64,000 bases of DNA from Macrostomum lignano (GCA_002269645.1 NIVC01001867.1:1-64000); one strand, 5' to 3'; positions 2,831 through 42,790 are shown, counted from the first letter of the stretch. The notes: generated from the letters alone by a model not told the origin. Program-made: numbers and translations.

Positions 2831-3854
2831 AATTTTACAGAAAAATCAAAATAAGAATGCTGAGATAATATTGCACACGAATGAATCGATGGGACTAAAG
2901 AACTTTTTTGCGGGAAAAGAATTTCTCTACATGTACGAGTAGTACATATTATATAAACATAGCTGCCATACGAAAGAAAGCATTAGTGGGCGAAACGTTT
3001 TGTATTTTAAACGAAAGTCGGTTGCAGAGATATAAAAAAACGCATACCAATAACATTTTTCTCCTTCTGCTTCCTCTCTCTGTCTCCATTTCCGGCTCCC
3101 TATTCGCCGCTTTTCGCCTGTGTATTTGCCTCTATCGCCCCTCTATCTCATTCTCTCTCACACCTCTCTCAGAAACTCTGTTCTTAAACACTGAACAAGT
3201 TTCACGGGTTGATCTCCTGCCAGCGTGTTTAGCCATACACATAGAAGGCTGCATGCACTGTGCGATTGTGCGATCCCGAGCCCAGTTGCCACCTGTAAAC
3301 AACTGAGTGATCATGATGTATTTGGACGCGTGGATGCTCGATCTCTGTCTGCCTCTCTTTCCCCTTCCTCCCTACACTGACTCGCCCCTCGTATGGAGTC
3401 GTGATTTCAGTCCACAGGGTCCAAAGTTGAAAGGAGCAACATATATGAGAGAGCTTAGCAATAAGAGAGCAGTCGCCAAAAGCGAGATAAGCGTTGAAAC
3501 AAGCAGCTTCTGCTGCATTAAAAAGTATTTATGTAGCTTTTTCTCTTCTGGGTGCACAAATGTTGTTACTGACAGCTAGAATGAGTAGGAGGCGCACGTG
3601 AGCTAACCACAAGAGAGAGCAAAGGTAGAGCTCAAAGGGCGTTAGATAAATCATTATTTACTATCATGTGTAAATGACACTGAAAAGTGACTACTTTAAG
3701 CGATTGCGATCTGGAAAGCTCAATTACTAACAACATGTACAAAACGCTGTGAAACAAATAAAACACAAAGTAAATAACAGAGCTTCCTGCTATCAGCCAG
3801 CTCGCGACCATCATTTCCTGATATACTGCTGCTGCTGCTGCTGCTGCTGCTGCA

Positions 3855-5359
3855 ATGCTTGACTTACAGACTACCTTCAACGACATCGGTGGCTTCGGCC
3901 TCTACCAACTGATCGTCTGCATTGTTGGCTGCTTAACCTGCGGCTTCTGTGGGATGATCATCGCAGGCAGTGCCTTCCACAACCTCATGACCTGCAGCGC
4001 CAACGCGACTGCGGAAGACATTGTCGCCGCGGCTAACAGCAGCCAGCACGGCTTCACGACGTCCGTCAGCGCCGAGTACGGTCTTGTGACAGTCAGGCCT
4101 CTCTCGGTGAGTTATCCGGCGTTTTGCTGCTCGCAGGCTGTATCCCCGGTTCGCTGATAGCTGGCCCGGCCTCGGACAGCATGGGCGAATTCCCGGACTG
4201 CTGATCGGCCTTTTGTGCACTCTGGCCACCAATCTGCTGGCCGCGCTAGCGCCGCAGTTCTGGCTGCACCTGGCCAGCCGTCTTGGCTGCGGATTCTTCG
4301 TCAGCTGCACCGTCGGTTCAATGTTTGTGTACGGCAACGAGGTGCTGATGACGGAGCATCGGGACAGGTTTGTTAAGACTTTTAACCTTGGCACCACTGT
4401 GGGTGGCATCCTGCTGGCCTTTCTAGCCTTTTCCCTCCGAGACTACAAGTGGCTGATGATCGCTAACAGCTTCTTCATTATTCCGTCAATCTTTGTGGTC
4501 GCCTTCCTACCCGAGAGTCCGTCCTGGCTGCTCTCGCAAAGAACGAAATCCGTCAAGAAGGTGAGGCGAGCGCTGCAGAAGATTGCATGGATCAACAGGC
4601 GCCCATTGCCAGAGAGTGTTCTCAGTCTGAGCTCGGGTGGTCAAGGTGAGGAGTCGCTGCAGCTCGAAGAGAACGGAGAGCTTCTCGACACTCAGCAAAC
4701 CAAAGACCATGGGAGGCCTCGCGCGATGCTGGGAGGGTCGCTCTGCACTGCCATCAAGAAACTGCTATCAGATAGGGTGTCGATATTCCGCTTGTTATCC
4801 ACTTGCCTGTACAGTTTCAGCAGCGGCTTCGCTTACTACGGCTTTCCATTCGTGATCACCCACGCCGTACCGAACATCTATATCACCTTCGCTCTCATGG
4901 CCGCTGTGGAGTCACCGGCTCTGCCATTGCTGAACATATTCAGTCGGGGCCGCACTCTGTTTTTCAGCGGGTGGCAATCTTCTGCTGTTGCTTTTTTATC
5001 GGAATTATTTTTTTCGTTGTGCCTACACAGCTCAGCACTGGTGTCATGGTTCTTTTGGTCTTCCTGGCCGTGAGTGGCAAGTTCTTCTCGAACATCGCCT
5101 TCTGTGCCATCATGGCGGTCGGGGCAGAGATCTACCCGACAGCGGTACGCAACACGGGACTCGGGCTGCTGATGGCCACCCTGCGGACCGGCTGCATGCT
5201 GTCGCCGCTGTGAACTTCATCCCCTACATGCCGGCCAGGTTCGCCACCCTCGGTCTCGCCTGTCTCGTTGCCGCCTTTCCGACCCGCAGTCTTCCGGACA
5301 CTCGCATCCAAGACCTGACCGAGACAGTGCCGACAGCTGCTGGTGGCGTTCGATTGTGA
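3855..5359 (+). pseudogene. SLC22-like transporter copy 2, broken by four 1-bp deletions (pseudogene or assembly errors)
   Basis: Colinear with copies 1 and 3 over the whole length. Single-base deletions relative to them at ~4086 (ggtcttgtg vs ggtctctgtg), ~4182 (agcatggg vs agcatcggg), ~4970 (agcgggtgg vs agcggggtgg) and ~5210 (ccgctgtgaac vs ccgctggtgaac) split it into the ORF-track fragments. Confidence 0.8.
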
Positions 5360-5960
5360 AGAAAAGAGGCACGGTGAAAATGTACAGCATCCGAATTGAC
5401 AGGCTTGATCCCAGCCGAAGCCACTTCTGGGACGTTTGCTTGTTAAATTTCTGCCATCAGGAGAGTCTAAAGTGAGATTGTAAATCGTGACGTGAGCCTC
5501 CGTTTCTCACCTCCCTTTGTCACAACCTAAAAATTCAGTCTTCTCATGAGAAATCAACCTGTCTGTTGATGAGTGATTCTGTTGCAGGTATTGCTTGCTG
5601 ATCGCGGAAACATTTTTAATTAGAGATTTCCAGAAAAAGATTTTGGTTTGCGGATGCGCTAAGCAGGCAAAATGTGTTCTGAGGACTGGCCATTTCGCCT
5701 CTTTCGGGTGGCTCCTTAGCAGTGTGGCGCTTGTCTACAAGCAGTTTTGCACAGCCTGGAGCAGATAGTCACTAATCTCCAAGCCGTTATATTTCTCAAT
5801 GTTTGCAACTTTGCAATGTAAATTTATTTTTTACGACTATTTATCTTACTTATCTTATTTATCTTATCATTATTTATTTTCTTTATAATATATGTCTAGT
5901 CTTGTTTTAGCTATGTTAAACGACTACCATCAGATTGGTATCATTACTATTATCATCAGA

Positions 5961-7718
5961 GCACCATTCCCCCAGATTAGCATCACTCCCCCAGATTAGC
6001 ACCACTCCCCCAGATTAGCACCACTCCCCAAGATTAGCACCATTCCCCAGATTAGCATCACTCCCCAGATTAGCACCACTCCCCAAGATTAGCACCATTC
6101 CCCCAGATTAGCATCACTCCCCAGATTAGCACCACTCCCCAAGATTAGCACCACTCCCCAAGATTAGCACCACTCCCCAAGATTAGCACCATTCCCCCAG
6201 ATTAGCATCACTCCCCCAGATTAGCACTACTCCCCTAGATTAGCACTACTCCCCAGATTAGCACCACTCCTCCAGATTAGCACCACTCCCCAGATTAGCA
6301 CCACTCCTCCAGATTAGCATCACTACCCCAGATTAGCATCACTACCCCAGATTAGCACTACTCCCCCAGATTAGCACCACTCCCCCAGATTAGCACTACT
6401 CCCCAGATTAGCACCACTCCCCCAGATTAGCACTACTCCTCCAGATTAGCACCACTCCCCAGATTAGCACCACTCCCCCAGATTAGCACCACTCCCCCAG
6501 ATTAGCACCACTCCCCAGATTAGCACCACTCCCCCAGATTAGCACTACTCCCCAGATTAGCACCACTCCTCCAGATTAGCACCACTCCCCAGATTAGCAC
6601 CACTCCTCCAGATTAGCACCACTCCTCCAGATTAGCATACTCCCAGATTAGCACCACTCCCCAGATTAGCACCACTCCCCAGATTAGCACCACTCCCCAG
6701 ATTAGCACCACTCCCCAGATTAGCACCACTCCCCAGATTAGCACTACTCCTCCAGATTAGCACCACTCCCCCAGATTAGCACCACTCCCCCAGATTAGCA
6801 CCACTCCCCAGATTAGCACCACTCCCCAGATTAGCACCACTCCTCCAGATTAGCACCACTCCCCAGATTAGCACCACTCCCCCAGATTAGCACACTCCCA
6901 GATTAGCACCACTCCCCCAGATTAGCACCACTCCCCAGATTAGCACCACTCATCCAGATTAGCACCTGCACTCCCCCAGATTAGCACCACTCCCCCAGAT
7001 TAGCACCACTCCCAAGATTAGCACCTCACTCCCAGATTAGCACCACTCCCCAGATTAGCACCACTCCCCAGATTAGCACCACTCCCCAGATTAGCACCAC
7101 TCCCCAGATTAGCACCACTCCCCAGATTAGCACCACTCCCCAGATTAGCACCTCACTCCCCAGATTAGCACCTCACTACCCCAGATTAGCACACTACCCC
7201 AGATTAGCACCACTCCCCAGATTAGCACCACTCCCCAGATTAGCACCACTCCCCAGATTAGAACTCCCCCAGATTAGAACACTCCCCCAGATTAGAAACA
7301 CTCCCCAGATTAGAAACACTCCCCCAGATTAGAAACCACTCCCCCAGATTAGAAACACTCCCCCAGATTAGAACTCCCCCAGATTAGAACACTCCCCCAG
7401 ATTAGAAACACTCCCCAGATTAGAAACACTCCCCAGATTAGAAACACTCCCCAGATTAGAAACACTCCCAGATTAGAAACACTCCCCCAGATTAGAAACA
7501 CTCCCCCAGATTAGAAACACTCCCCAGATTAGAAACACTCCCCCAGATTAGAAACACTCCCCAGATTAGAAACACTCCCCCAGATTAGAAACACTCCCCA
7601 GATTAGAAACACTCCCCAGATTAGAAACACTCCCCCAGATTAGAAACACTCCCCCAGATTAGCACCACTCCCCCAGATTAGAAACACTCCCCCAGATTAG
7701 AAACACTCCCCTAGATTA
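5961..7718. repeat. Minisatellite, ~18-19 bp unit (CCCCAGATTAGCACCACT), switching to an AGAAACACT variant in the last ~450 bp
   Basis: Directly visible tandem units between SLC22 copies 2 and 3. Confidence 0.95.
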
Positions 7719-21594: not shown

Positions 21595-24500
21595 GGGAGA
21601 TTGGGTCAGGAAGAGGGAGAGTGGGTCAGGAAGAGGGAGATTGCGGTCAGAAAGAGGGAGATTGGGGTCAAGAAGAGGGAGATTGGGGTCAGGAAGAGGG
21701 AGATTGCGGTCAGGAAGAGGGAGATTGGGGTCAAGAAGAGGGAGAGTGGGTCAGGAAGAGGGAGATTGGGGTCAGGAAGAGGGAGATTGGGGTCAGGAAA
21801 GAGGGAGATTGCGGTCAGGAAAAGGGAGATTGGGGTCGGAAAGAGGGAGATTGCGGTCAGGAAGAGGGAGATTGGGTCAGGAAGAGGGAGGGTGGGTCAG
21901 GAAGAGGGAGATTGGGTCAGGAAAAGGGAGGGTGAGTCAGGAAGAGGGAGGGTGAGTCAGGAAGAGGGAGGGTGAGTCAGGAAGAGGAAGATTGGGTCAG
22001 GAAAAGGGAGGGTGAGTCAGGAAGAGGAAGATTGGGTCAGGAAGAGGGAGGGTGAGTCAAGAAGAGGGAGGGTGAGTCAGGAAGAGGGAGGGTGAGTCAG
22101 GAAGAGGGAGGGTGAGTCAGGAAGAGGGAGGGTGGGTCAGGAAGAGGGAGATTGGGTCAGGAAAAGGGAGGGTGAGTCAGGAAGAGAAAGATTGGGTCAG
22201 GAAGAGGGAGGGTGAGTCAGGAAGAGGGAGGGTGGGTCAGGAAGAGGAAGATTGGGTCAGGAAAAGGGAGGGTGAGTCAGGAAGAGGGAGGGTGGGTCAG
22301 GAAGAGGGAGATTGGGTCAGGAAAAGGGAGGGTGAGTCAGGAAGAGGGAGGGTGAGTCAGGAAGAGGGAGGGTGGGTCAGGAAGAGGAAGATTGGGTCAG
22401 GAAAAGGGAGGGTGAGTCAGGAAGAGGGAGGGTGGGTCAGGAAGAGGGAGATTGGGTCAGGAAAAGGGAGGGTGAGTCAGGAAGAGGGAGGGTGAGTCAG
22501 GAAGAGGGAGGGTGGGTCAGGAAGAGAAAGATTGGGTCAGGAAGAGGGAGGGTGAGTCAGGAAGAGGGAGGGTGAGTCAGGAAGAGGGAGGGTGAGTCAG
22601 GAAGAGGAAGATTGGGTCAGGAAAAGGGAGGGTGAGTCAGGAAGAGGGAGGGTGGGTCAGGAAGAGGGAGATTGGGTCAGGAAAAGGGAGGGTGAGTCAG
22701 GAAGAGGGAGGGTGAGTCAGGAAGAGGGAGGGTGGGTCAGGAAGAGGAAGATTGGGTCAGGAAAAGGGAGGGTGAGTCAGGAAGAGGGAGGGTGGGTCAG
22801 GAAGAGGGAGATTGGGTCAGGAAAAGGGAGGGTGAGTCAGGAAGAGGGAGGGTGAGTCAGGAAGAGGGAGGGTGGGTCAGGAAGAGGAAGATTGGGTCAG
22901 GAAAAGGGAGGGTGAGTCAGGAAGAGGGAGGGTGAGTCAGGAAGAGGGAGGGTGAGTCAGGAAGAGGGAGGGTGAGTCAGGAAGAGGGAGGGTGAGTCAG
23001 GAAGAGGGAGGGTGAGTCAGGAAGAGGGAGGGTGAGTCAGGAAGAGGGAGGGTGAGTCAGGAAGAGGAAGATTGGGTCAGGAAAAGGGAGGGTGAGTCAG
23101 GAAGAGGGAGGGTGGGTCAGGAAGAGGGAGATTGGGTCAGGAAAAGGGAGGGTGAGTCAGGAAGAGGGAGGGTGAGTCAGGAAGAGGGAGGGTGGGTCAG
23201 GAAGAGGAAGATTGGGTCAGGAAAAGGGAGGGTGAGTCAGGAAGAGGGAGGGTGGGTCAGGAAGAGGGAGATTGGGTCAGGAAGAGGGAGGGTGAGTCAG
23301 GAAGAGGGAGGGTGAGTCAGGAAGAGGGAGGGTGAGTCAGGAAGAGGAAGATTGGGTCAGGAAAAGGGAGGGTGAGTCAGGAAGAGGGAGGGTGGGTCAG
23401 GAAGAGGGAGATTGGGTCAGGAAAAGGGAGGGTGAGTCAGGAAGAGGGAGGGTGAGTCAGGAAGAGGGAGGGTGGGTCAGGAAGAGGAAGATTGGGTCAG
23501 GAAAAGGGAGGGTGAGTCAGGAAGAGGGAGGGTGAGTCAGGAAGAGGGAGGGTGAGTCAGGAAGAGGGAGGGTGAGTCAGGAAGAGGGAGGGTGAGTCAG
23601 GAAGAGGGAGGGTGAGTCAGGAAGAGGGAGGGTGAGTCAGGAAGAGGGAGGGTGAGTCAGGAAGAGGAAGATTGGGTCAGGAAAAGGGAGGGTGAGTCAG
23701 GAAGAGGGAGGGTGGGTCAGGAAGAGGAAGATTGGGTCAGGAAAAGGGAGGGTGAGTCAGGAAGAGGGAGGGTGGGTCAGGAAGAGGGAGATTGGGTCAG
23801 GAAAAGGGAGGGTGAGTCAGGAAGAGGGAGGGTGAGTCAGGAAGAGGGAGGGTGGGTCAGGAAGAGGGAGATTGGGTCAGGAAAAGGGAGGGTGAGTCAG
23901 GAAGAGGGAGGGTGGGTCAGGAAGAGGGAGATTAGGTCAGGAAAAGGGAGGGTGAGTCAGGAAGAGGGAGGGTGAGTCAGGAAGAGGGAGGGTGAGTCAG
24001 GAAGAGGAAGATTGGGTCAGGAAAAGGGAGGGTGAGTCAGGAAGAGGGAGGGTGGGTCAGGAAGAGGGAGATTGGGTCAGGAAAAGGGAGGGTGAGTCAG
24101 GAAGAGGGAGGGTGAGTCAGGAAGAGGGAGGGTGGGTCAGGAAGAGGAAGATTGGGTCAGGAAAAGGGAGGGTGAGTCAGGAAGAGGGAGGGTGGGTCAG
24201 GAAGAGGGAGATTGGGTCAGGAAAAGGGAGGGTGAGTCAGGAAGAGGGAGGGTGAGTCAGGAAGAGGGAGGGTGGGTCAGGAAGAGAAAGATTGGGTCAG
24301 GAAGAGGGAGGGTGAGTCAGGAAGAGGGAGGGTGAGTCAGGAAGAGGGAGGGTGAGTCAGGAAGAGGAAGATTGGGTCAGGAAAAGAGAGGGTGAGTCAG
24401 GAAGAGGGAGGGTGGGTCAGGAAGAGGGAGATTGGGTCAGGAAAAGGGAGGGTGAGTCAGGAAGAGGGAGGGTGAGTCAGGAAGAGGGAGGGTGGGTCAG

Positions 24501-25145
24501 GAAGAGGAAGATTGGGTCAGGAAAAGGGAGGGTGAGTCAGGAAGAGGGAGGGTGAGTCAGGAAGAGGGAGGGTGGGTCAGGAAGAGGGAGATTGGGTCAG
24601 GAAAAGGGAGGGTGAGTCAGGAAGAGGGAGGGTGAGTCAGGAAGAGGGAGGGTGGGTCAGGAAGAGGAAGATTGGGTCAGGAAAAGGGAGGGTGAGTCAG
24701 GAAGAGGGAGGGTGAGTCAGGAAGAGGGAGGGTGAGTCAGGAAGAGGGAGGGTGAGTCAGGAAGAGGGAGGGTGAGTCAGGAAGAGGGAGGGTGAGTCAG
24801 GAAGAGGGAGGGTGAGTCAGGAAGAGGGAGGGTGAGTCAGGAAGAGGAAGATTGGGTCAGGAAAAGGGAGGGTGAGTCAGGAAGAGGGAGGGTGGGTCAG
24901 GAAGAGGAAGATTGGGTCAGGAAAAGGGAGGGTGAGTCAGGAAGAGGGAGGGTGAGTCAGGAAGAGGGAGGGTGAGTCAGGAAGAGGAAGATTGGGTCAG
25001 GAAAAGGGAGGGTGAGTCAGGAAGAGGGAGGGTGAGTCAGGAAGAGGGAGGGTGAGTCAGGAAGAGGAAGATTGGGTCAGGAAAAGGGAGGGTGAGTCAG
25101 GAAGAGGAAGATTGGGTCAGGAAAAGGGAGAGTGAGTCAGGAAGA
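21595..25145. repeat. Purine-rich 20-bp satellite (GAAGAGGGAGGGTGAGTCAG and variants), ~3.5 kb, with higher-order patterning
   Basis: Stays in exact register with the 60-nt lines. About five unit variants recur in blocks; 21-bp divergent units at the left end. Confidence 0.97.
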
Positions 25146-25725
25146 AGGATAGTGGGTCGGGAAGTGGGAAATAGGACAGGAAAGGATCGAGTGAGGGAAT
25201 TTAAACAGCAGATTCTGTTGTCGCAGAATGCTGCAGTCAGTTCGGGTTGTTCAGCAGTGTTAGTAAACAAGATTGTTGGACAGTTCTGCCCGCCTTATAT
25301 ATTAATATTTTCTGTCAGCATTGTGAACACACTTGGGCCTGATCTGCATAAATATTAAAATAGCCCATTGCTTCGATGTACCGCTAGCCGGGTCTCGACT
25401 GCGACAGCAATATTCTCGATACAGCCTCGGTGCCTCGAATGAACCGAGTGACCGGATTTCTTCCCAACCAGCCCGCTCGGTGCGGTGCAGGCGGCTCTGC
25501 TTCAGCGAAAATTAATTATTACTCGGTTGCGAGCGTGATGGACGGATGCGTGGGTGCCGGGGTGGCCTGAAATCACTGGGCCAACACTCCGCGCTTCAAA
25601 AGTATCAAAAAGATGCACTAATTTTAGCTTTTGGGAAGCTGCATGGCTGCACAATATGCGCTACATTGTGACTGCCTGTCGGGTTCTGCTGCGAATGCGA
25701 ACGAGCCATGGGGTAGTCTTGGGCG

Positions 25726-31134: not shown

Positions 31135-31803
31135 GGCCACAGACAGCTTGGGCCACAGACAGCTTGGGTCACAGACAGCTTGGGCCACAGACAGCTTGGG
31201 CCACAGACAGCTTGGGCCACAGACAGCTTGGGCCACAGACAGCTTGGGCCACAGACAGCTTGGGCCACAGACAGCTTGGGCCACAGACAGCTTGGGCCAC
31301 AGACAGCTTGGGCCACAGACAGTTTGGGCCACAGACAGCTTGGGTCACAGACAGCTTGGGTCACAGACAGCTTGGGCCACAGACAGCTTGGGCCACGGAC
31401 AGCTTGGGCCACGGACAGCTTGGGCCACAGACAGCTTGGGCCACAGACAGCTTGGGTCATACACAGCTTGGGTCATACACAGCTTGGGTCATACACAGCT
31501 TAGGTCATACACAGCTTGAGTCATACACAGCTTGGGTCATACACGGCTTAGGTCATACACAGCTTGGGTCATACACAGCTTAGGTCATACACAGCTTGGG
31601 TCATACACAGCTTGGGTCATACACAGCTTGGGTCATACACAGCTTGGGTCATACACAGCTTGGCTCATACACAGCTTGGGTCATACACAGCTTGGCTCAT
31701 ACACAGCTTGGGTCATACACAGCTTGGCTCATACACAGCTTGGCTCATACACGGCTTGGCTCATACACAGCTTAGGTCATACACAGCTTGGGTCATACAC
31801 AGC
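31135..31803. repeat. 16-bp minisatellite (CAGCTTGGGCCACAGA grading to CAGCTTGGGTCATACA) upstream of the GPCR acceptor
   Basis: Direct tandem units ending ~30 bp before the CCTTTCGCAG acceptor. Confidence 0.95.
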
Positions 31804-31833
31804 TCGTCCCGTCCCCGCCCCCTCCTTTCGCAG

Positions 31834-32864
31834 CGAACCTCTCCGACCACGAAGGGAAATGGCACTGCGGCGTCAGCATCGAGAACCACCTCGAGCGCCT
31901 GTCTGAGATCTCTCAAACCGGAGACAACGTCATTGTGGCTGTCTACCTGCTGGTGACCTCCGCCGGTCTCCTTGGAAACAGCCTCATCCTCCTGGTCAGC
32001 ATCCGTGCCAGGCAGTATCGCCGGTCCGCGGTGCACACTTACGTGACCCACCTTGCCGCCGCCGACCTGTTCTTCCTGGCCATCTGCGCCCCGGTGCACA
32101 CCATCGTGTTCTTCTGGGCCAGTGCCTGGCCTCTGGGTGACCCCATGTGCAAACTTCTGCACTTCCTGCAGCCGCTGGCCATGCACGCCTCCGCCGCCTT
32201 CCTCACCGCCATGGCCGTCGACCGCTGCCTGTCCGTCTCCGGCCTCGGCAGCGCCGCCGGCCTCGGAGTGGCGGGCTCGATGCGCGGCTCCCAGCTCGCG
32301 GCCGCCGCTCCGCGCTACGCAGGTGCTCTGTGGGCCGGCGCCGTACTGGTGGCGCTGCCCTGGCCGCTGGTGTACCGGGTGAAGAATGGCGTCTGCACCT
32401 ACGAGCTGTCCGAGCAGTACGGCCCGCTCAAGATCGGCCTGTTCGCCGGCCGCGCCACGCTGGGCTACGCCGTGCCGTTCGTCATCATCGCCTTCTGCTC
32501 GGTGCGGATGCTGCGCCGCCTGTGGCGCTTCGGCCGGCACCGCGGCGCCGCCAACAGTCGGCGCGTCATCGCCCTGGTTGTGGCGCTGGTCTTCTCCTTC
32601 TTCATCTGCTGGCTGCCGCTGCACGTCGCCGACATCGTCACCGCCTTCTTCGTCTGTCGGGTGTTCTTCCTGCCCGACGTCTCGGCCGCCAACCTGATGG
32701 CGCTGAACCGCTTCAACCAGCTGACCATCCTGCTGTCCTATTGCAACGCCTGCGCCAACCCCGCCATCTACAGCTGCCTGTCTGAGAGCTTCCGGCGCGG
32801 GCTGTACCAGATCCTGGCCAGGACAGGCCGGGCCAGGGCGAACCGAGCCAGGCGGCCCGTCTGA
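31834..32864 (+). CDS. Class A (rhodopsin-like) neuropeptide GPCR, galanin/allatostatin/somatostatin-receptor-like; main exon
   Basis: Seven hydrophobic segments with GN (TM1), HLAAADL (TM2), WPLG..MCK, AVDRC (DRY variant), CWLP and NPAIY. A phase-1 acceptor at 31833 and an NLS sequon imply a short upstream coding exon that I could not place. Confidence 0.88.
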
Positions 32865-35571: not shown

Positions 35572-37885
35572 TTAATCTATCGGATTATCTAGCTACTAAT
35601 CTATCGGATTATCTAGCTACTAATCTATTGGATTATCTAGCTACTAGTCTATAGGATTATCTAGCCTATCTAGTCTTATCTAGTCTATCAGATTATCTAG
35701 CTACTCATTTATCGGATTATCTAGCTACTCATTTATCGGATTATCTAGCTACTCATTTATCGGATTATCTAGCTACTCATTTATCGGATTATCTAGCTAC
35801 TCATTTATCGGATTATCTAGATACTAACCTATCGGATTATCTAGCTACTAACCTATCGGATTATCTAGCTACTCATTTATCGGATTATCTAGCTACTCAT
35901 TTATCGGATTATCTAGCTACTAACCTATCGGATTATCTAGCTACTCATTTATCGGATTATCTAGCTACTCATTTATCGGATTATCTAGCTACTCATTTAT
36001 CGGATTATCTAGCTACTAACCTATCGGATTATCTAGCTACTCATTTATCGGATTATCTAGCTACTAACCTATCGGATTATCTAGCTACTCATTTATCGGA
36101 TTATCTAGCTACTAACCTATCGGATTATCTAGCTACTCATTTATCGGATTATCTAGCTACTAACCTATCGGATTATCTAGCTACTCATTTATCGGATTAT
36201 CTAGCTACTCATTTATCGGATTATCTAGCTACTCATTTATCGGATTATCTAGCTACTCATTTATCGGATTATCTAGCTACTAACCTATCGGATTATCTAG
36301 CTACTCATTTATCGGATTATCTAGCTACTCATTTATCGGATTATCTAGCTACTAACCTATCGGATTATCTAGCTACTCATTTATCGGATTATCTAGCTAC
36401 TCATTTATCGGATTATCTAGCTACTCATTTATCAGATTATCTAGCTACTAACCTATCGGATTATCTAGCTACTCATTTATCGGATTATCTAGCTACTAAC
36501 CTATCGGATTATCTAGCTACTCATTTATCGGATTATCTAGCTACTAACCTATCGGATTATCTAGCTACTCATTTATCGGATTATCTAGCTACTAACCTAT
36601 CGGATTATCTAGCTACTCATTTATCGGATTATCTAGCTACTCATTTATCGGATTATCTAGCTACTAACCTATCGGATTATCTAGCTACTCATTTATCGGA
36701 TTATCTAGCTACTCATTTATCGGATTATCTAGCTACTAACCTATCGGATTATCTAGCTACTCATTTATCGGATTATCTAGCTACTCATTTATCGGATTAT
36801 CTAGCTACTCATTTATCAGATTATCTAGCTACTAACCTATTGGATTATCTATCTACTCATTTATCGGATTATCTAGCTACTCATTTATCGGATTATCTAG
36901 CTACTCATTTATCGGATTATCTAGCTACTCATTTATCGGATTATCTAGCTACTCATTTATCAGATTATCTAGCTACTAACCTATTGGATTATCTAGCTAC
37001 TCATTTATCGGATTATCTAGCTACTCATTTATCGGATTATCTAGCTACTCATTTATCGGATTATCTAGCTACTCATTTATCGGATTATCTAGCTACTCAT
37101 TTATCGGATTATCTAGCTACTAACCTATCGGATTATCTAGCTACTCATTTATCGGATTATCTAGCTACTCATTTATCGGATTATCTAGCTACTCATTTAT
37201 CAGATTATCTAGCTACTAACCTATTGGATTATCTATCTACTCATTTATCGGATTATCTAGCTACTCATTTATCGGATTATCTAGCTACTAACCTATCGGA
37301 TTATCTAGCTACTCATTTATCGGATTATCTAGCTACTCATTTATCGGATTATCTAGCTACTCATTTATCAGATTATCTAGCTACTAACCTATTGGATTAT
37401 CTATCTACTCATTTATCGGATTATCTAGCTACTCATTTATCGGATTATCTAGCTACTCATTTATCGGATTATCTAGCTACTCATTTATCGGATTATCTAG
37501 CTACTCATTTATCAGATTATCTAGCTACTAACCTATTGGATTATCTAGCTACTCATTTATCGGATTATCTAGCTACTCATTTATCGGATTATCTAGCTAC
37601 TCATTTATCGGATTATCTAGCTACTCATTTATCGGATTATCTAGCTACTCATTTATCGGATTATCTAGCTACTCATTTATCGGATTATCTAGCTACTAAC
37701 CTATCGGATTATCTAGCTACTCATTTATCGGATTATCTAGCTACTAACCTATCGGATTATCTAGCTACTCATTTATCGGATTATCTAGCTACTCATTTAT
37801 CGGATTATCTAGCTACTCATTTATCGGATTATCTAGCTACTCATTTATCAGATTATCTAGCTACTAACCTATTGGATTATCTATC
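35572..37885. repeat. 24-bp satellite (GATTATCTAGCTACTCATTTATCG), ~2.3 kb
   Basis: Direct tandem units with two interspersed variants (CATTT/AACCT); source of the DYLATHLS pseudo-ORF. Confidence 0.97.
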
Positions 37886-38274
37886 TAGCTAGCTAGCATA
37901 TCGATTACGAGTGAGTTTGAAATCCAGCAGACTATCCAGCTACCAAACCTTTGAAAAATTTACCTACTAATCCAACTAATCCAGATAGTAAGGCGTTATA
38001 TCCGGACAATAAATCTTTTTGAAAGCAGATTTTTAGAGTCTTTTGCAAGCTTGTTTTTCTTAACCTGATTTATGAACATCAGAAATATCTCTCGGAATGT
38101 CCGGGACCCTCCTTTGCTCGCAGCCAGAATAGTGCGGAATCCCATTGTTTGATAATGGGCAGGAAACATCGGCAGGGCAGTTGATGGCGGCTTGCTGTGC
38201 TGTCTGAGGCCAGTCGAAACTGAACTTGCGACAATACCTGGGCAAAAATTTCTTTATATGAAAGCCTTATGACC

Positions 38275-39103: not shown

Positions 39104-42100
39104 TCAGTTGAAACCGTCATAGTCGGAGTTCTCCCGCTGCTGGGGCTGCTGCTTCAGCCGGTTGTCCAGCCTGTTGCCCTCGGCCAGGCTGCGGAAGTGC
39201 TGCGAGTTGGCGAAGGTCGAGTAGAGGGTGAACAGCACGTGCAGGGACTGCACCCGGCTCTTGTAGACTGGGATGTCCAGCAGGCCTGCGAGGGGGAGCA
39301 GAGGGATGCCAGTTGCTAAGGCGAAAAAGGCGGCTTATCTTAGTGTTAGCGTCTCTGTACCATGTGTTAGCATCCCTGTACACCTAGCATTAGCGTCCCT
39401 GCACACCCTCCGTTAGCGTCCCTGTAAAACCTGTGTTAGCGTCCTGTACAACCTGTGTTAGCGTCCTGTACAACCTGTGTTAGCGTCCTGTACAACCTGT
39501 GTTAGCGTCCTGTACACCCAGCATTAGCGTCCCTGCACACCCTCCGTTAGCGTCCTGTAAACCTTGCGTTAGCGTCCCTGTACAACCTGTGCTAGCATCC
39601 TGTACACCCTGCGTTAGCGTCCCTGTACAACCTGTGCTAGCATCCTGTACACTCTGCGTTAGCGTCCTGTGCACCGTGTGTTCTAGCGTCCTGTGGTCCG
39701 CACCTGAGTGCCCCTGTGTTTATACAGGTTGTTCAAGCACCCATGAGCCACCCAATCGCAACCCACCACAGACGATGTCGCAGAAGGCGGGCAGGTCGCA
39801 CTCCAGATCCGAGGTGGGCAGCCCGACCTCCTTAAGCAGCTCCTCAATCTCGGGCGGCCACTCGCTCATGAGCTGCTCAATGTCGGGCATGGGCTTGGTG
39901 TAGTTCACCGTTGGCGGCTGCTTGTGCTTGTGCAGCTCCGAGATGCTGGAGATCCATTTTTCAATTGCGTGCGGATTCCGTTCGGCGTTTTCCACCCGGG
40001 ACACCTGCGTCTTCTTGGACACCAGCAGCTTGCCGACAGCGCGCAGCTGCAGGTCCAGCACGGTGGGGTCGGACTGGCTGGCGCACGGCTCGTCCAGCAT
40101 CCGCAGGCCCAGCTGGTCCGGCTTCGAGTCCGGCCGCGGCACCTTGATGAAGGCGTCGATGTCGCCCACGGCCGGGATGAAGTCCGGGATGAACGGCTTG
40201 AGGCGGTGGTCCAGCTCGATGTGCTGCGGCGTGTAGCGCTTGATGTAGTCGAACAGCTCGGCGAACTCCGGGTGGCTGGCGCTCACGTCCCTGTAGTCCT
40301 CGGGGTTGTACGCGCCCTCGATCGGCTGCGTGTCGTCCTCCTCGGATTCCTCACCGCTCTCGGAGCCGCTCTCGTCATCCTCCTCCTCGGTTGGCGAGCG
40401 GGCCGGAGCTCGCGGCTGCTGCTGCGGCTGCTGCTGCTGTCGGTGATGGGGATGGTGATGGGGATGGTGATGGGGATGATGATGGGGATGGTGATGGGGA
40501 TGGTGATGGGGATGGTGATGGTGATGGTGATGATGGTGATGATAGTGATGGTGATGGTGCTTGAGATAATGCGTCTGTTCCCTAAACCTCTGCATTCCTC
40601 TAGAAATGAACTCTCCCATCCCCTCCTTGATCCGGCCGTGGACTGCAGCTGCCGCAGCTCACCATTCTCTGAGACCTTCCGCTGCCGCTGTCCTCCGAGC
40701 CGGGCCTGAGATGCTGCTGCTGCTGCTGCTGCTGCCGACTGTCTGGAGTTCGACCCGGTCCTGCGGGAGGCGGCGGCGGGTGCCTGAGGACTTTCAGCCG
40801 GGCGGGGGGCCGCAGCTGCTGCTCGCCGAACCACAGGTGGGGCTGGTCGGGAAGCTGTGACATCGAAGCGATGGGGATTTGGGAAGTTGGAAAAGCAGCT
40901 GACCCCCCTGGGGAGGACTGGCCTCGGTATTATACCTTAGTGGCTCAGCTTCGTCTTGCCCAGCCCCTCCTATAGGCAAGGTGTGCAGTGCGGACTGCGG
41001 AGCTCGTTAGGGAATCTGCGGAGGGAAGGGGGAGAGGTTCGGGCTCGGGGGGGGGGGAGCCTCAGCCTGGGATCCCCTTTCCCCTCGGGTAGGGAGCTCG
41101 GGCTGAGCGGGAAGAGCAGGAAGGAATTGAGGAGAATGTCTTCTAAGCTCATAATAATTGTGTGTCATTTGAGTCACGGGGGGGGGGGTTGCGTGCTCAA
41201 GGCAGCTGCTGCTCAGGCCCGATTAATGCTGGAAAGTGGCAAGGGCAATCGGGGGGGGGGGCAACAGTTGTGGATAGCGGCAGCAATTTGTGCAAGATTT
41301 ATGCCCAGAGTTAAGCAAATTAAGTGCAAGATTTGCATCGCAGTGCGAGAAGCATAATTACGTTGAGGTACTAACGATACTACTGAAGACAGCAATATAG
41401 TAGTGTATTATGTTTGGATAAGCAGTAATTTGTTAAGGCAGAGTAAACTAAAGGAAATAGTCTTACTGAACGATGGCACTCGGGGTGTGGCTATATCCTC
41501 AGTGTCGGGAATATCAATGGACTCGTCGTAGGGTTTGTTACTGTGCAAGTTTTCCTGTGAAATTCGGTCATGAATTTAGCGAATGTAGCGATAAGCAACG
41601 CAGCTGTTTAAAGCGAGGTTAAATACAACTACGTGATACAGAAATCATTGAGTAAAAATCCGTTGAAAACATTTTTTTTATATTGCAAGGCAATTTGTGA
41701 GCCAATTGCTGCTGATTACGAGCAAATTCAAACCAATTTTTCGTTATACAAAATATGTTTAATATTGTTAAGAAATTATTGGATTAGCAGTTGAGTTCAA
41801 TCTATTGAAAAACACGACGCGCTTTTAAAGAACCTCCTTCCAGTAAAACCTCCTGCTTACCTACTCCTCCTATTCTCGGAGTTGGCTCATATGTACTGTC
41901 TATGTCTTCTGGGTCGGAGACTTGCAACGACTCATCAAATGGCTGATTGTGGAAAATGGACTTGTTCTGGGGGAAGTTTTAAATTTAACACAATCTTAGA
42001 TTGAAATGCTAAGTTAAGACAATATGAATTGAATCGGAGATTGTATTCGTTGTTAACTTACAAAACATGCGTTCTGTTAAGAATATCGTATGGTGTATAA

Positions 42101-42507
42101 ATGACCCGGAATACTTATAAAAATGGGCTTGAAAATTTATATCCCATTTACGTATCGTACGTAGATGTATATAGTGTCCAGGAAAGACATAGTGAATAAT
42201 CTACCATCAGTTCATATGAACACAGAAAAATAATCAGGCAAAAAGCTACACGTCCTATTTAATAAATCATTTATTTTATCAATCATAAATTATACAACGT
42301 TTTTAAAGCCGACAATGTAAGTCAGAGATATGGGGGATATCTCTTTTCTCTTATCAATGGGGAATTCTTCTTAGTTTAAAATGAGACAAAGGTTCAAGTC
42401 ACCCGTACGAGTGAATTATTGCTTAAGTAAAATAGTACAAACAAGGAAATTATTTAAAAAAGGCACTCAATACTTACAGCCCCTTGTCTCTCCTCGTCGG
42501 AGTCCAT
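39104..42507 (-). CDS. IFT46: Intraflagellar transport protein 46 (IFT-B), ~355-365 aa depending on isoform
   Basis: Exon 42507-42478 (MDSDEERQGA, GTAAGT donor); optional 12-nt exon 42073-42062; alternative exons 41966-41861 or 41554-41467 (NQPFDE / NKPYDE); then 40760-40663, 40436-39767 (EGAYNPEDY, LKPFIPDFIPAVGDIDAFIKVPRPD, VLDLQLR, MPDIEQLMSEWP) and 39285-39104 (LLDIPVY...SLHVLFTLY..F.NSQHF). All phases are consistent. The core exons are certain; the 5' exons are inferred. Confidence 0.9.
39340..39670. repeat. ~22-23 bp minisatellite in the last IFT46 intron (GTTAGCGTCCTGTACAACCTGT)
   Basis: Tandem imperfect units between exons 39767 and 39285. Confidence 0.85.
40441..40556. repeat. (GGTGATGGGGAT)n/(GAT)n repeat reading as poly-His/Pro on the minus strand, immediately upstream of the IFT46 core exon
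   Basis: In frame with the IFT46 core ORF, but upstream of the ACCGACAG acceptor at 40437. Confidence 0.85.
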
Positions 42508-42519
42508 GCAGGCGCACAG

Positions 42520-42790
42520 AAAAATCTCAGCTATGCAAAATTGAAAAAGAAGGAAACTCTTTTTAAATAGTCTTAAGCAATACAATATTGATTTTAATAT
42601 AAATTCAAAAAAGTTTTCATACATTTTTTTGTATTAAATTGAGCAATAACGTAAATTTTAAAGTCAATATTTCACTAGCTTTGTTTAAAAATGATAAACT
42701 AACTTTCAAATTCTTGAGGAATGTGCTTCGTGCTTCTTTTTATTTCTTCGAAAGATCCGTCGGCCGTGTTGTGTGGACGTGGTAGTAAAA
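42520..42790. promoter_or_regulatory. Probable shared divergent promoter region between IFT46 (minus) and ZAK (plus)
   Basis: The IFT46 ATG is at 42507. A CpG-containing patch (42720-42780) ends in a possible donor (GTG|GTAGTA) ahead of a CpG-depleted block leading to the ZAK acceptor. Confidence 0.4.

Follow-up and report, generated by a model that had tools for sequence, protein, structure and literature searches.

Two copies of exon 2 in IFT46

We analysed a 64,000-nucleotide stretch of the Macrostomum lignano genome (GCA_002269645.1, NIVC01001867.1:1-64000, hereafter the window), in which the minus strand carries a five-exon gene for IFT46 whose second exon is represented by two tandem versions, A and B. 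Exon 1 (42478-42531) has its ATG at 42507, encodes MDSDEERQGA and exits in phase 0 at the donor GCT/GTAAGT, the slash marking the exon boundary. Exon A (2a; 41861-41966, 106 nt) runs from ccccag/AAC to GTAG/gtaagc and encodes NKSIFHNQPFDESLQVSDPEDIDSTYEPTPRIGGV, with the motif NQPFDE, while exon B (2b; 41467-41554, 88 nt) runs from tcacag/GAA to TTCA/gtaaga and encodes ENLHSNKPYDESIDIPDTEDIATPRVPSF, with the motif NKPYDE. Both are entered in phase 0 and left in phase 1. Exon 3 (40663-40760, 98 nt; the 40760 exon, written C in the joins below) is entered in phase 1 and encodes (G/R)PGRTPDSRQQQQQQQHLRPGSEDSGSGRSQRM, exon 4 (39767-40436) encodes an acidic linker and most of the IFT46_B_C domain, and exon 5 (39104-39285) completes that domain and carries the C-terminal end with its stop codon.

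This anatomy agrees with public protein records. UniRef entry A0A1I8JKB1 is reproduced residue for residue by joining exon 1, exon A, exon 3 and the segments 40436-39767 and 39285-39104, and the A form covers the complete Pfam PF12317 (IFT46_B_C) profile, positions 1-211 of 211, with 310.6 bits against a gathering cut-off of 22.2. The top database matches of the gene are M. lignano IFT46 proteins, the first being BOX15_Mlig020277g2, followed by those of other animals. Exon 4 begins at 40436 in the public proteins (acceptor ccgacag/CAG), and a start at 40589 (cag/AGG) was ruled out, as ...SQRM is followed by QQQPQQQ, from 40436, in every public protein. The cag acceptor at 40590, upstream of exon 4, would add 51 in-frame residues and is skipped by all of them. 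An in-frame His/Pro-rich tract (HHHHHYHHHH...PHHHPHHH) fills positions 40437-40589 of the same strand; because exon 4 begins at 40436 in public proteins, this tract is intronic and lies between exons 3 and 4.

A hidden Markov model of the N-terminal motif, built from 104 non-Macrostomum IFT46 proteins, was searched against every stop-to-stop segment in all six frames of the window. The scores were 50.7 bits for exon A (E 1.6e-14) and 44.6 bits for exon B (E 1.3e-12), a resemblance far beyond chance, and no third copy of the motif was found in the six frames of the 64 kb, where the next score was 7.9 bits. The two exons lie 306 nt apart, share 41% amino-acid identity across 29 aligned codons, and are genuine paralogues that both derive from IFT46's conserved second exon. 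At the level of sequence, the splice sites of both, with CAG as acceptor and GTAAG as donor, agree with the M. lignano consensus of a CAG acceptor and a GT[AG]AG donor (PMC8629364). The original prediction had given coordinates, peptides, splice motifs (CCCCAG/GTAAGC and TCACAG/GTAAGA) and phases for both exons, all of which were borne out on the sequence, and its proposal that the two peptides are paralogous is supported by the alignment of each with the IFT46 N-terminal motif at the scores above.

Ancestral residues are divided between the two copies. The animal consensus reads ..NQPYDESLEVPDAEE(V/I)ASxYxPTPRVP, to which exon A corresponds as NQPFDESLQVSDPEDIDSTYEPTPRIGG and exon B as NKPYDESIDIPDTEDIA-----TPRVPSF, so aligned that PYDES, IPD and TPRVP are kept in B and STYxPTPR in A. 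Exon B lacks the five-residue STYxP segment, and in this differs from the metazoan motif with its A-S-x-Y-x-P segment; a short form like B is the sole copy in a lamprey and the first copy in the annelid Capitella.

The duplicated segment has a mapped counterpart in Chlamydomonas, where the ODA16-binding site of IFT46 comprises residues 23-44 and its core, 29-Nxxx(D/E)E-34, occupies a basic ODA16 cleft (J Biol Chem 2025, PMC11879689). The Kd of that contact is about 1 uM, either D33K or the replacement of HDEE by AAAA abolishes it, and the motif is conserved across many ciliated organisms (PMC11879689). Genetic work links the IFT46 N-terminus to outer-arm transport (PMC5576905), and on these two sources the role of this region in ODA16/DAW1-dependent transport, which the original prediction had called established, is correctly stated. 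Both A (NQPFDE) and B (NKPYDE) contain Nxxx(D/E)E, including the Asp equivalent to D33 of the algal protein, and the duplicated exon is predicted from this motif to be the ODA16/DAW1-docking exon. Like the algal sequence NQPHDE, each version places N-x-x-x-D-E a few residues from the N-terminus and follows it with an acidic stretch; unlike the alga, the flatworm gene holds two genomic versions, and DAW1 binding there is predicted from sequence. DAW1 itself lies outside the window. The motif is reported to be absent from human, mouse and cow IFT46 (PMC11879689). In some predicted mammalian IFT46 proteins a motif exon lies upstream of the usual MADNSSDE start, encoding ENQPYDESLEINDSEEVAS in the marsupials Vombatus and Notamacropus and ENQTYDERLEINDSEEVAS in the cat Prionailurus.

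Reading frame and the choice between A and B

Exons A and B are both 3n+1 nt long. The frame stays open in exon 1+A+C and in exon 1+B+C, while exon 1+A+B+C and exon 1+C each meet stop codons, the A+B join doing so eight codons into B (GVGKLAQ, then stop). With both copies asymmetric (phase 0 to 1), only single inclusion therefore keeps the frame, in agreement with the original prediction that either exon links exon 1 to the 40760 exon and that using both shifts the frame. The accompanying claim that no exon bridges A and B is supported as well. No credible bridging exon was found in the 306-nt intron between them, the seven formal AG...GT micro-exon candidates being dismissed because all have GTTTT-type donors and none has a pyrimidine tract. 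A weak alternative donor of exon A would, however, put A and B in frame.

That donor belongs to the tandem site GTAG/GTAAGC at 41860-41865 (minus strand), whose upstream GT, read as GGA/GTAGGT, lies 4 nt before the main donor and shortens exon A to 102 nt. The frame of A(102)+B+C is open, which makes this the sole semi-plausible route to in-frame inclusion of both exons, and the product would be one protein with two tandem docking motifs, spanning ...TPRIGG-ENLHSNKPYDES. Donor pairs with a 4-nt spacing form a common group among alternative 5' splice sites, but the upstream site matches the consensus CAG/GTAAGT at 5 of 9 positions, compared with 7 of 9 for the main donor, and directly adjoins that strong GTAAG site. 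GenBank transcripts take the downstream donor (...RIGGV-G-PGR), and two motifs in one protein occurred in none of 126 IFT46 proteins. We consider such co-inclusion very unlikely.

Exclusive exon pairs that arose by tandem duplication and are enforced by frame or by nonsense-mediated decay are known from FGFR2 IIIb/IIIc, tropomyosin, insect 14-3-3 and the Dscam clusters. The flatworm exons resemble such pairs in being adjacent and homologous, of the same phase class and of a length that is not a multiple of three, with canonical splice sites and with stop codons following both double inclusion and skipping. Judged by these features, A and B appear to have all the properties that sequence can show of mutually exclusive exons enforced by reading frame. 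All donors are U2-type and U12 signals are absent, so that U2/U12 incompatibility does not apply. The reading frame itself is left as a mechanism for exclusivity, with double inclusion and skipping presumably leading to early stops and decay.

The explanation we favour, and hold to be probable with real room for doubt, is a tandem duplication of the IFT46 docking exon in which each productive mRNA carries one copy, giving A and B forms. An ancestral exon 2, entered in phase 0, left in phase 1 and 3n+1 nt long, would have been duplicated in tandem; transcripts with both copies or neither would be frameshifted, stop early and be unproductive, probably undergoing nonsense-mediated decay. Two proteins differing only in the docking peptide would result, a major A form (NQPFDE...DSTYEPTPR) and a minor B form (NKPYDE...IATPR, without STYxP). 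Beyond this, we infer that B may be spliced in today, that the choice may be regulated, and that the two peptides may differ in affinity for, or regulation by, ODA16/DAW1 or other partners.

Use and age of exon B

The join of exon 1, A and exon 3 is present in five public M. lignano proteins, three from GenBank, with models at three loci, and two from UniProt. Because the GenBank annotation was built from transcripts, the A junctions have RNA support. At the protein level the join to exon 3 reads V-G-PGRTPD when it comes from A and H-R-PGRTPD when it comes from B. The latter is found in UniProt A0A1I8IRV3, which starts ENLHSNKPYDESIDIPDTEDIATPECH-RPGRTPD and so has exon B as its first exon, joined to exon 3. 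Its ...ATPECH-R differs from the ...ATPRVPSF-R of the window (41470-41485), a difference that fits the loss of one C from a CCCC run together with a shifted donor and is probably due to faulty assembly of the older M. lignano genome.

Several results weigh against the favoured reading of A and B as alternative exons in current use. A0A1I8IRV3 has no start Met, and its 1-nt difference from the window in the C-run is offset by the odd donor C/GTTCAG; the entry is probably the output of gene prediction on ML2, an older assembly documented to be less accurate. On these grounds (no Met, homopolymer difference, non-consensus donor and less accurate assembly) we rejected it as proof that B is used. 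Exon B itself has a weak pyrimidine tract at its acceptor and an A at donor position -1. No B-containing transcript product was found in the protein collection, where a query with the N-terminus returned only a frameshifted M. lignano entry. The pair also differs from established mutually exclusive pairs in that transcript-based models contain A only and B appears only in a probable prediction, in that no docking/selector RNA pairing was found (the short AT-rich or CAG-repeat inverted matches are at chance level), and in its intron of 306 nt, a length that excludes steric hindrance. Among nine other animals with RNA-seq-based NCBI isoforms (molluscs, echinoderms, amphioxus and a nemertean), none showed a swap of this exon. 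The paralogous loci of M. lignano were rejected as a gauge of current constraint on B, having no power for this purpose because the copies are too alike.

The inverted matches include a 17-nt, 82% complementary AT-rich pair, 41823-41839 with 42443-42459, at the starts of the A-B intron and of intron 1. Its pairing would loop out exon A, and it is probably a chance match, one of 30 similar pairs.

In another explanation exon B is a relic, an alternative exon for most of its history that is now not spliced, or negligibly so, leaving a single A-form N-terminus. Such a relic is suggested by the restriction of all transcript-based GenBank models, at three loci, to A, by B's weaker acceptor tract and non-G at donor position -1, by the inability of the paralogue comparison to show current constraint on B, and by the lack of a B-containing transcript in the protein collection. 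The annotation pipeline of the Mlig_3_7 assembly, however, discarded isoforms below 75% of the major one; since minor isoforms were dropped by design, the absence of B from that annotation is uninformative. The 90% cluster holds six GenBank/UniProt models and no transcript-assembly members, and with no B product in the protein collection either, these records speak neither for nor against B at the RNA level. Exon B, moreover, carries no stop, frameshift or splice-site lesion in four genomic copies. Together with its retained score, considered below, these observations lead us to regard the relic explanation as unlikely.

The gene's 5' end bears on a further possibility. GenBank PAA50422, PAA77658 and PAA63147 start AEIFLCACMDSDEE, that is, at 42531, directly after an AG (window 42531-42533, minus strand). 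Transcripts in the M. lignano GenBank annotation are cut at spliced-leader (SL) sites, and the AG upstream of exon 1 is likely an SL trans-splice acceptor. The terminal AUG of the SL would be out of frame with MDSDEE at exon 1, where it would open a short overlapping frame, and would be in frame on exon B.

Exon B might thus serve as an alternative 5' exon, with the SL trans-spliced onto its acceptor, for example on a transcript starting in the A-B intron, to give M-ENLHSNKPYDES... The M. lignano SL ends ...TTGCATG (PMC8629364) and B is entered in phase 0, leaving SL-AUG/GAA AAC in frame; A0A1I8IRV3 opens exactly with B's first codon, no Met preceding it, and 30-39% of M. lignano genes are trans-spliced. 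The acceptor TCACAG, however, mismatches the enriched trans-acceptor motif YTNCAG, the upstream cis donors of exon 1 and A would normally compete, and A0A1I8IRV3 is explained equally well as a partial prediction. Trans-splicing onto B therefore seems to us distinctly improbable.

Sequence divergence indicates that the duplication is old. Across the 29 aligned codons, the proportion of synonymous differences between A and B (pS) is 0.91, which is saturated, the nonsynonymous proportion (pN) is 0.38 and third-position identity is 31%; different codons are used at 9 of the 12 residues identical between the copies. Neutral decay of a canonical exon 2 was simulated, counting copies that kept an open frame and scored 44.6 bits or more. 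Such copies made up 4.7% of the total at 0.25 substitutions per site, and at 0.5, 0.75 and 1.0 substitutions per site there were none in 5000 runs each. Because no simulated neutral copy at these higher divergences kept an open frame at 44.6 bits or more, B cannot have been drifting since the duplication, and its present score, matched by so few copies even at 0.25 substitutions per site, also speaks against the relic explanation. Both copies were protein-coding under selection for most of their history, the present use of B being a separate question.

The same divergence bears on whether B is mainly a poison exon, its coding capacity incidental and its inclusion with A lowering IFT46 output by mRNA decay. 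The premature stop eight codons into B in the A+B join is what such an exon would provide, but this role needs no 29-residue motif kept in frame 0 through saturated synonymous divergence, and we find it scarcely credible.

M. lignano is a hidden polyploid with several near-identical copies per gene, and three loci of Mlig_3_7 (GCA_002269645.1) hold this same gene, one of them differing from the window at 3 alignment columns over 2 kb. Exon B is identical at 88 of 88 positions in three paralogous loci. Over the four genomic copies, which are 97-99% identical with introns included, variable sites number 0 of 88 in B and 8 of 306 and 23 of 706 in its flanking introns. One paralogous locus (L001) has a deletion of ~160 nt and a small rearrangement in intron 1 (window 42130-42320), which account for most of the 203 variable columns of that intron.

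Elsewhere in the window, minisatellites with units of 15-60 nt fill much of the sequence (43 Tandem Repeats Finder rows, for example 5960-7718, 21595-25169, 35686-37887 and 39343-39694). One sits in the last IFT46 intron, and the window's minisatellites yield long spurious open reading frames. An intronless open reading frame of 358 aa for a rhodopsin-family G-protein-coupled receptor lies at 31788-32864 on the plus strand (Pfam 7tm_1, 131 bits), ~6 kb downstream of IFT46.

Exon 2 in other animals and the meaning of a second docking peptide

In all species examined, the motif exon begins in phase 0, with five or six codons ahead of the Asn, and ends in phase 1. Boundaries and phases match those of A and B in the mollusc Lottia (106 nt, the length of A), the cnidarian Exaiptasia (118 nt), the annelids Capitella (130 nt) and Dimorphilus (115 nt) and the nemertean Tubulanus. 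IFT46 exon 2 is thus, as far as gene structures indicate, ancient and asymmetric, and because of this asymmetry any tandem duplicate would be usable only instead of its sister, unless a splice site shifts.

Annelids provide further duplicates of this kind. Capitella teleta KB300512.1 has three tandem copies of exon 2 (positions 4285-4393, 4490-4619 and 4780-4891 of extract L004; 109, 130 and 112 nt), of which only the middle one is annotated; the first is a short form without the ASxY segment, and all three leave a G over. Dimorphilus gyrociliatus has two (3168-3282 and 3517-3625 of extract L007), one of 115 nt that is annotated and one of 109 nt that is not. The second Dimorphilus copy, LQFHENQPFDASVELPIEDRRSIPSITPPRLSPKLT, is divergent and has good splice sites, but its motif is broken, reading NQPFDA (D-E to D-A). 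All annelid copies came from the same motif profile; each is 3n+1 nt long, with a pyrimidine tract at its AG acceptor and with GT as its donor. A single copy is present in Tubulanus, Owenia, Lottia and Exaiptasia. Another search for homologues, with Capitella as the seed, turned up no additional annelids.

These copies are like A and B in lying in tandem in the same intron, bounded by AG...GT, with a length of 3n+1 and phase 0 to 1. They differ in number and order, Capitella having three with the short form first, and in the broken motif of the second Dimorphilus copy. A and B have E-D-I in common at a place where E-E-(V/I) stands in the other animals and E-D in 1 of 104 other sequences. This points to an independent duplication in the flatworm lineage, or to gene conversion, rather than to a single ancient event. 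A broader reading, which we offer tentatively and consider possible but doubtful, is that exon 2 has been repeatedly duplicated in spiralians and used as a frame-enforced exclusive cluster through which cell types would load outer dynein arms or other cargo differently.

Several isoform sets from the nine animals above drop the motif exon by way of a downstream Met start. Isoforms of molluscs, a nemertean and vertebrates that lose the motif by such a start, among them Mytilus X5, Lineus X4 and Anguilla X2, are like the proposed flatworm forms in that 5'-end processing alters the docking peptide and leaves the IFT-B core untouched. In those isoforms the motif is switched on or off, whereas in the flatworm one version would take the place of the other.

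Cargo choice and release by intraflagellar transport (IFT) trains is an open question, and the contact between IFT46 and ODA16 is one of a small number of cargo-adaptor links that have been traced to a short peptide. A gene with two natural docking peptides, or up to three in annelids, on an otherwise unchanged protein would offer a ready-made experiment, in which DAW1 affinities, the response to release driven by Arl3, and expression in motile and sensory cilia could be compared. Macrostomum sperm are not known to have axonemes, so sperm, one of the settings named in the original prediction, would be a doubtful context for an IFT46 switch. The species is tractable for transgenesis (PMC5730564), making isoform-specific knock-down or reporters feasible.

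If B proves unused, the pair would be a well-preserved exon duplicate of local interest only. The recurrence in annelids makes the functional reading more attractive, and a literature search turned up no account of alternative docking exons in IFT46. If different ciliated cell types do load cargo through different docking peptides, this would be a switch of IFT cargo selection at the level of splicing that has not previously been described.

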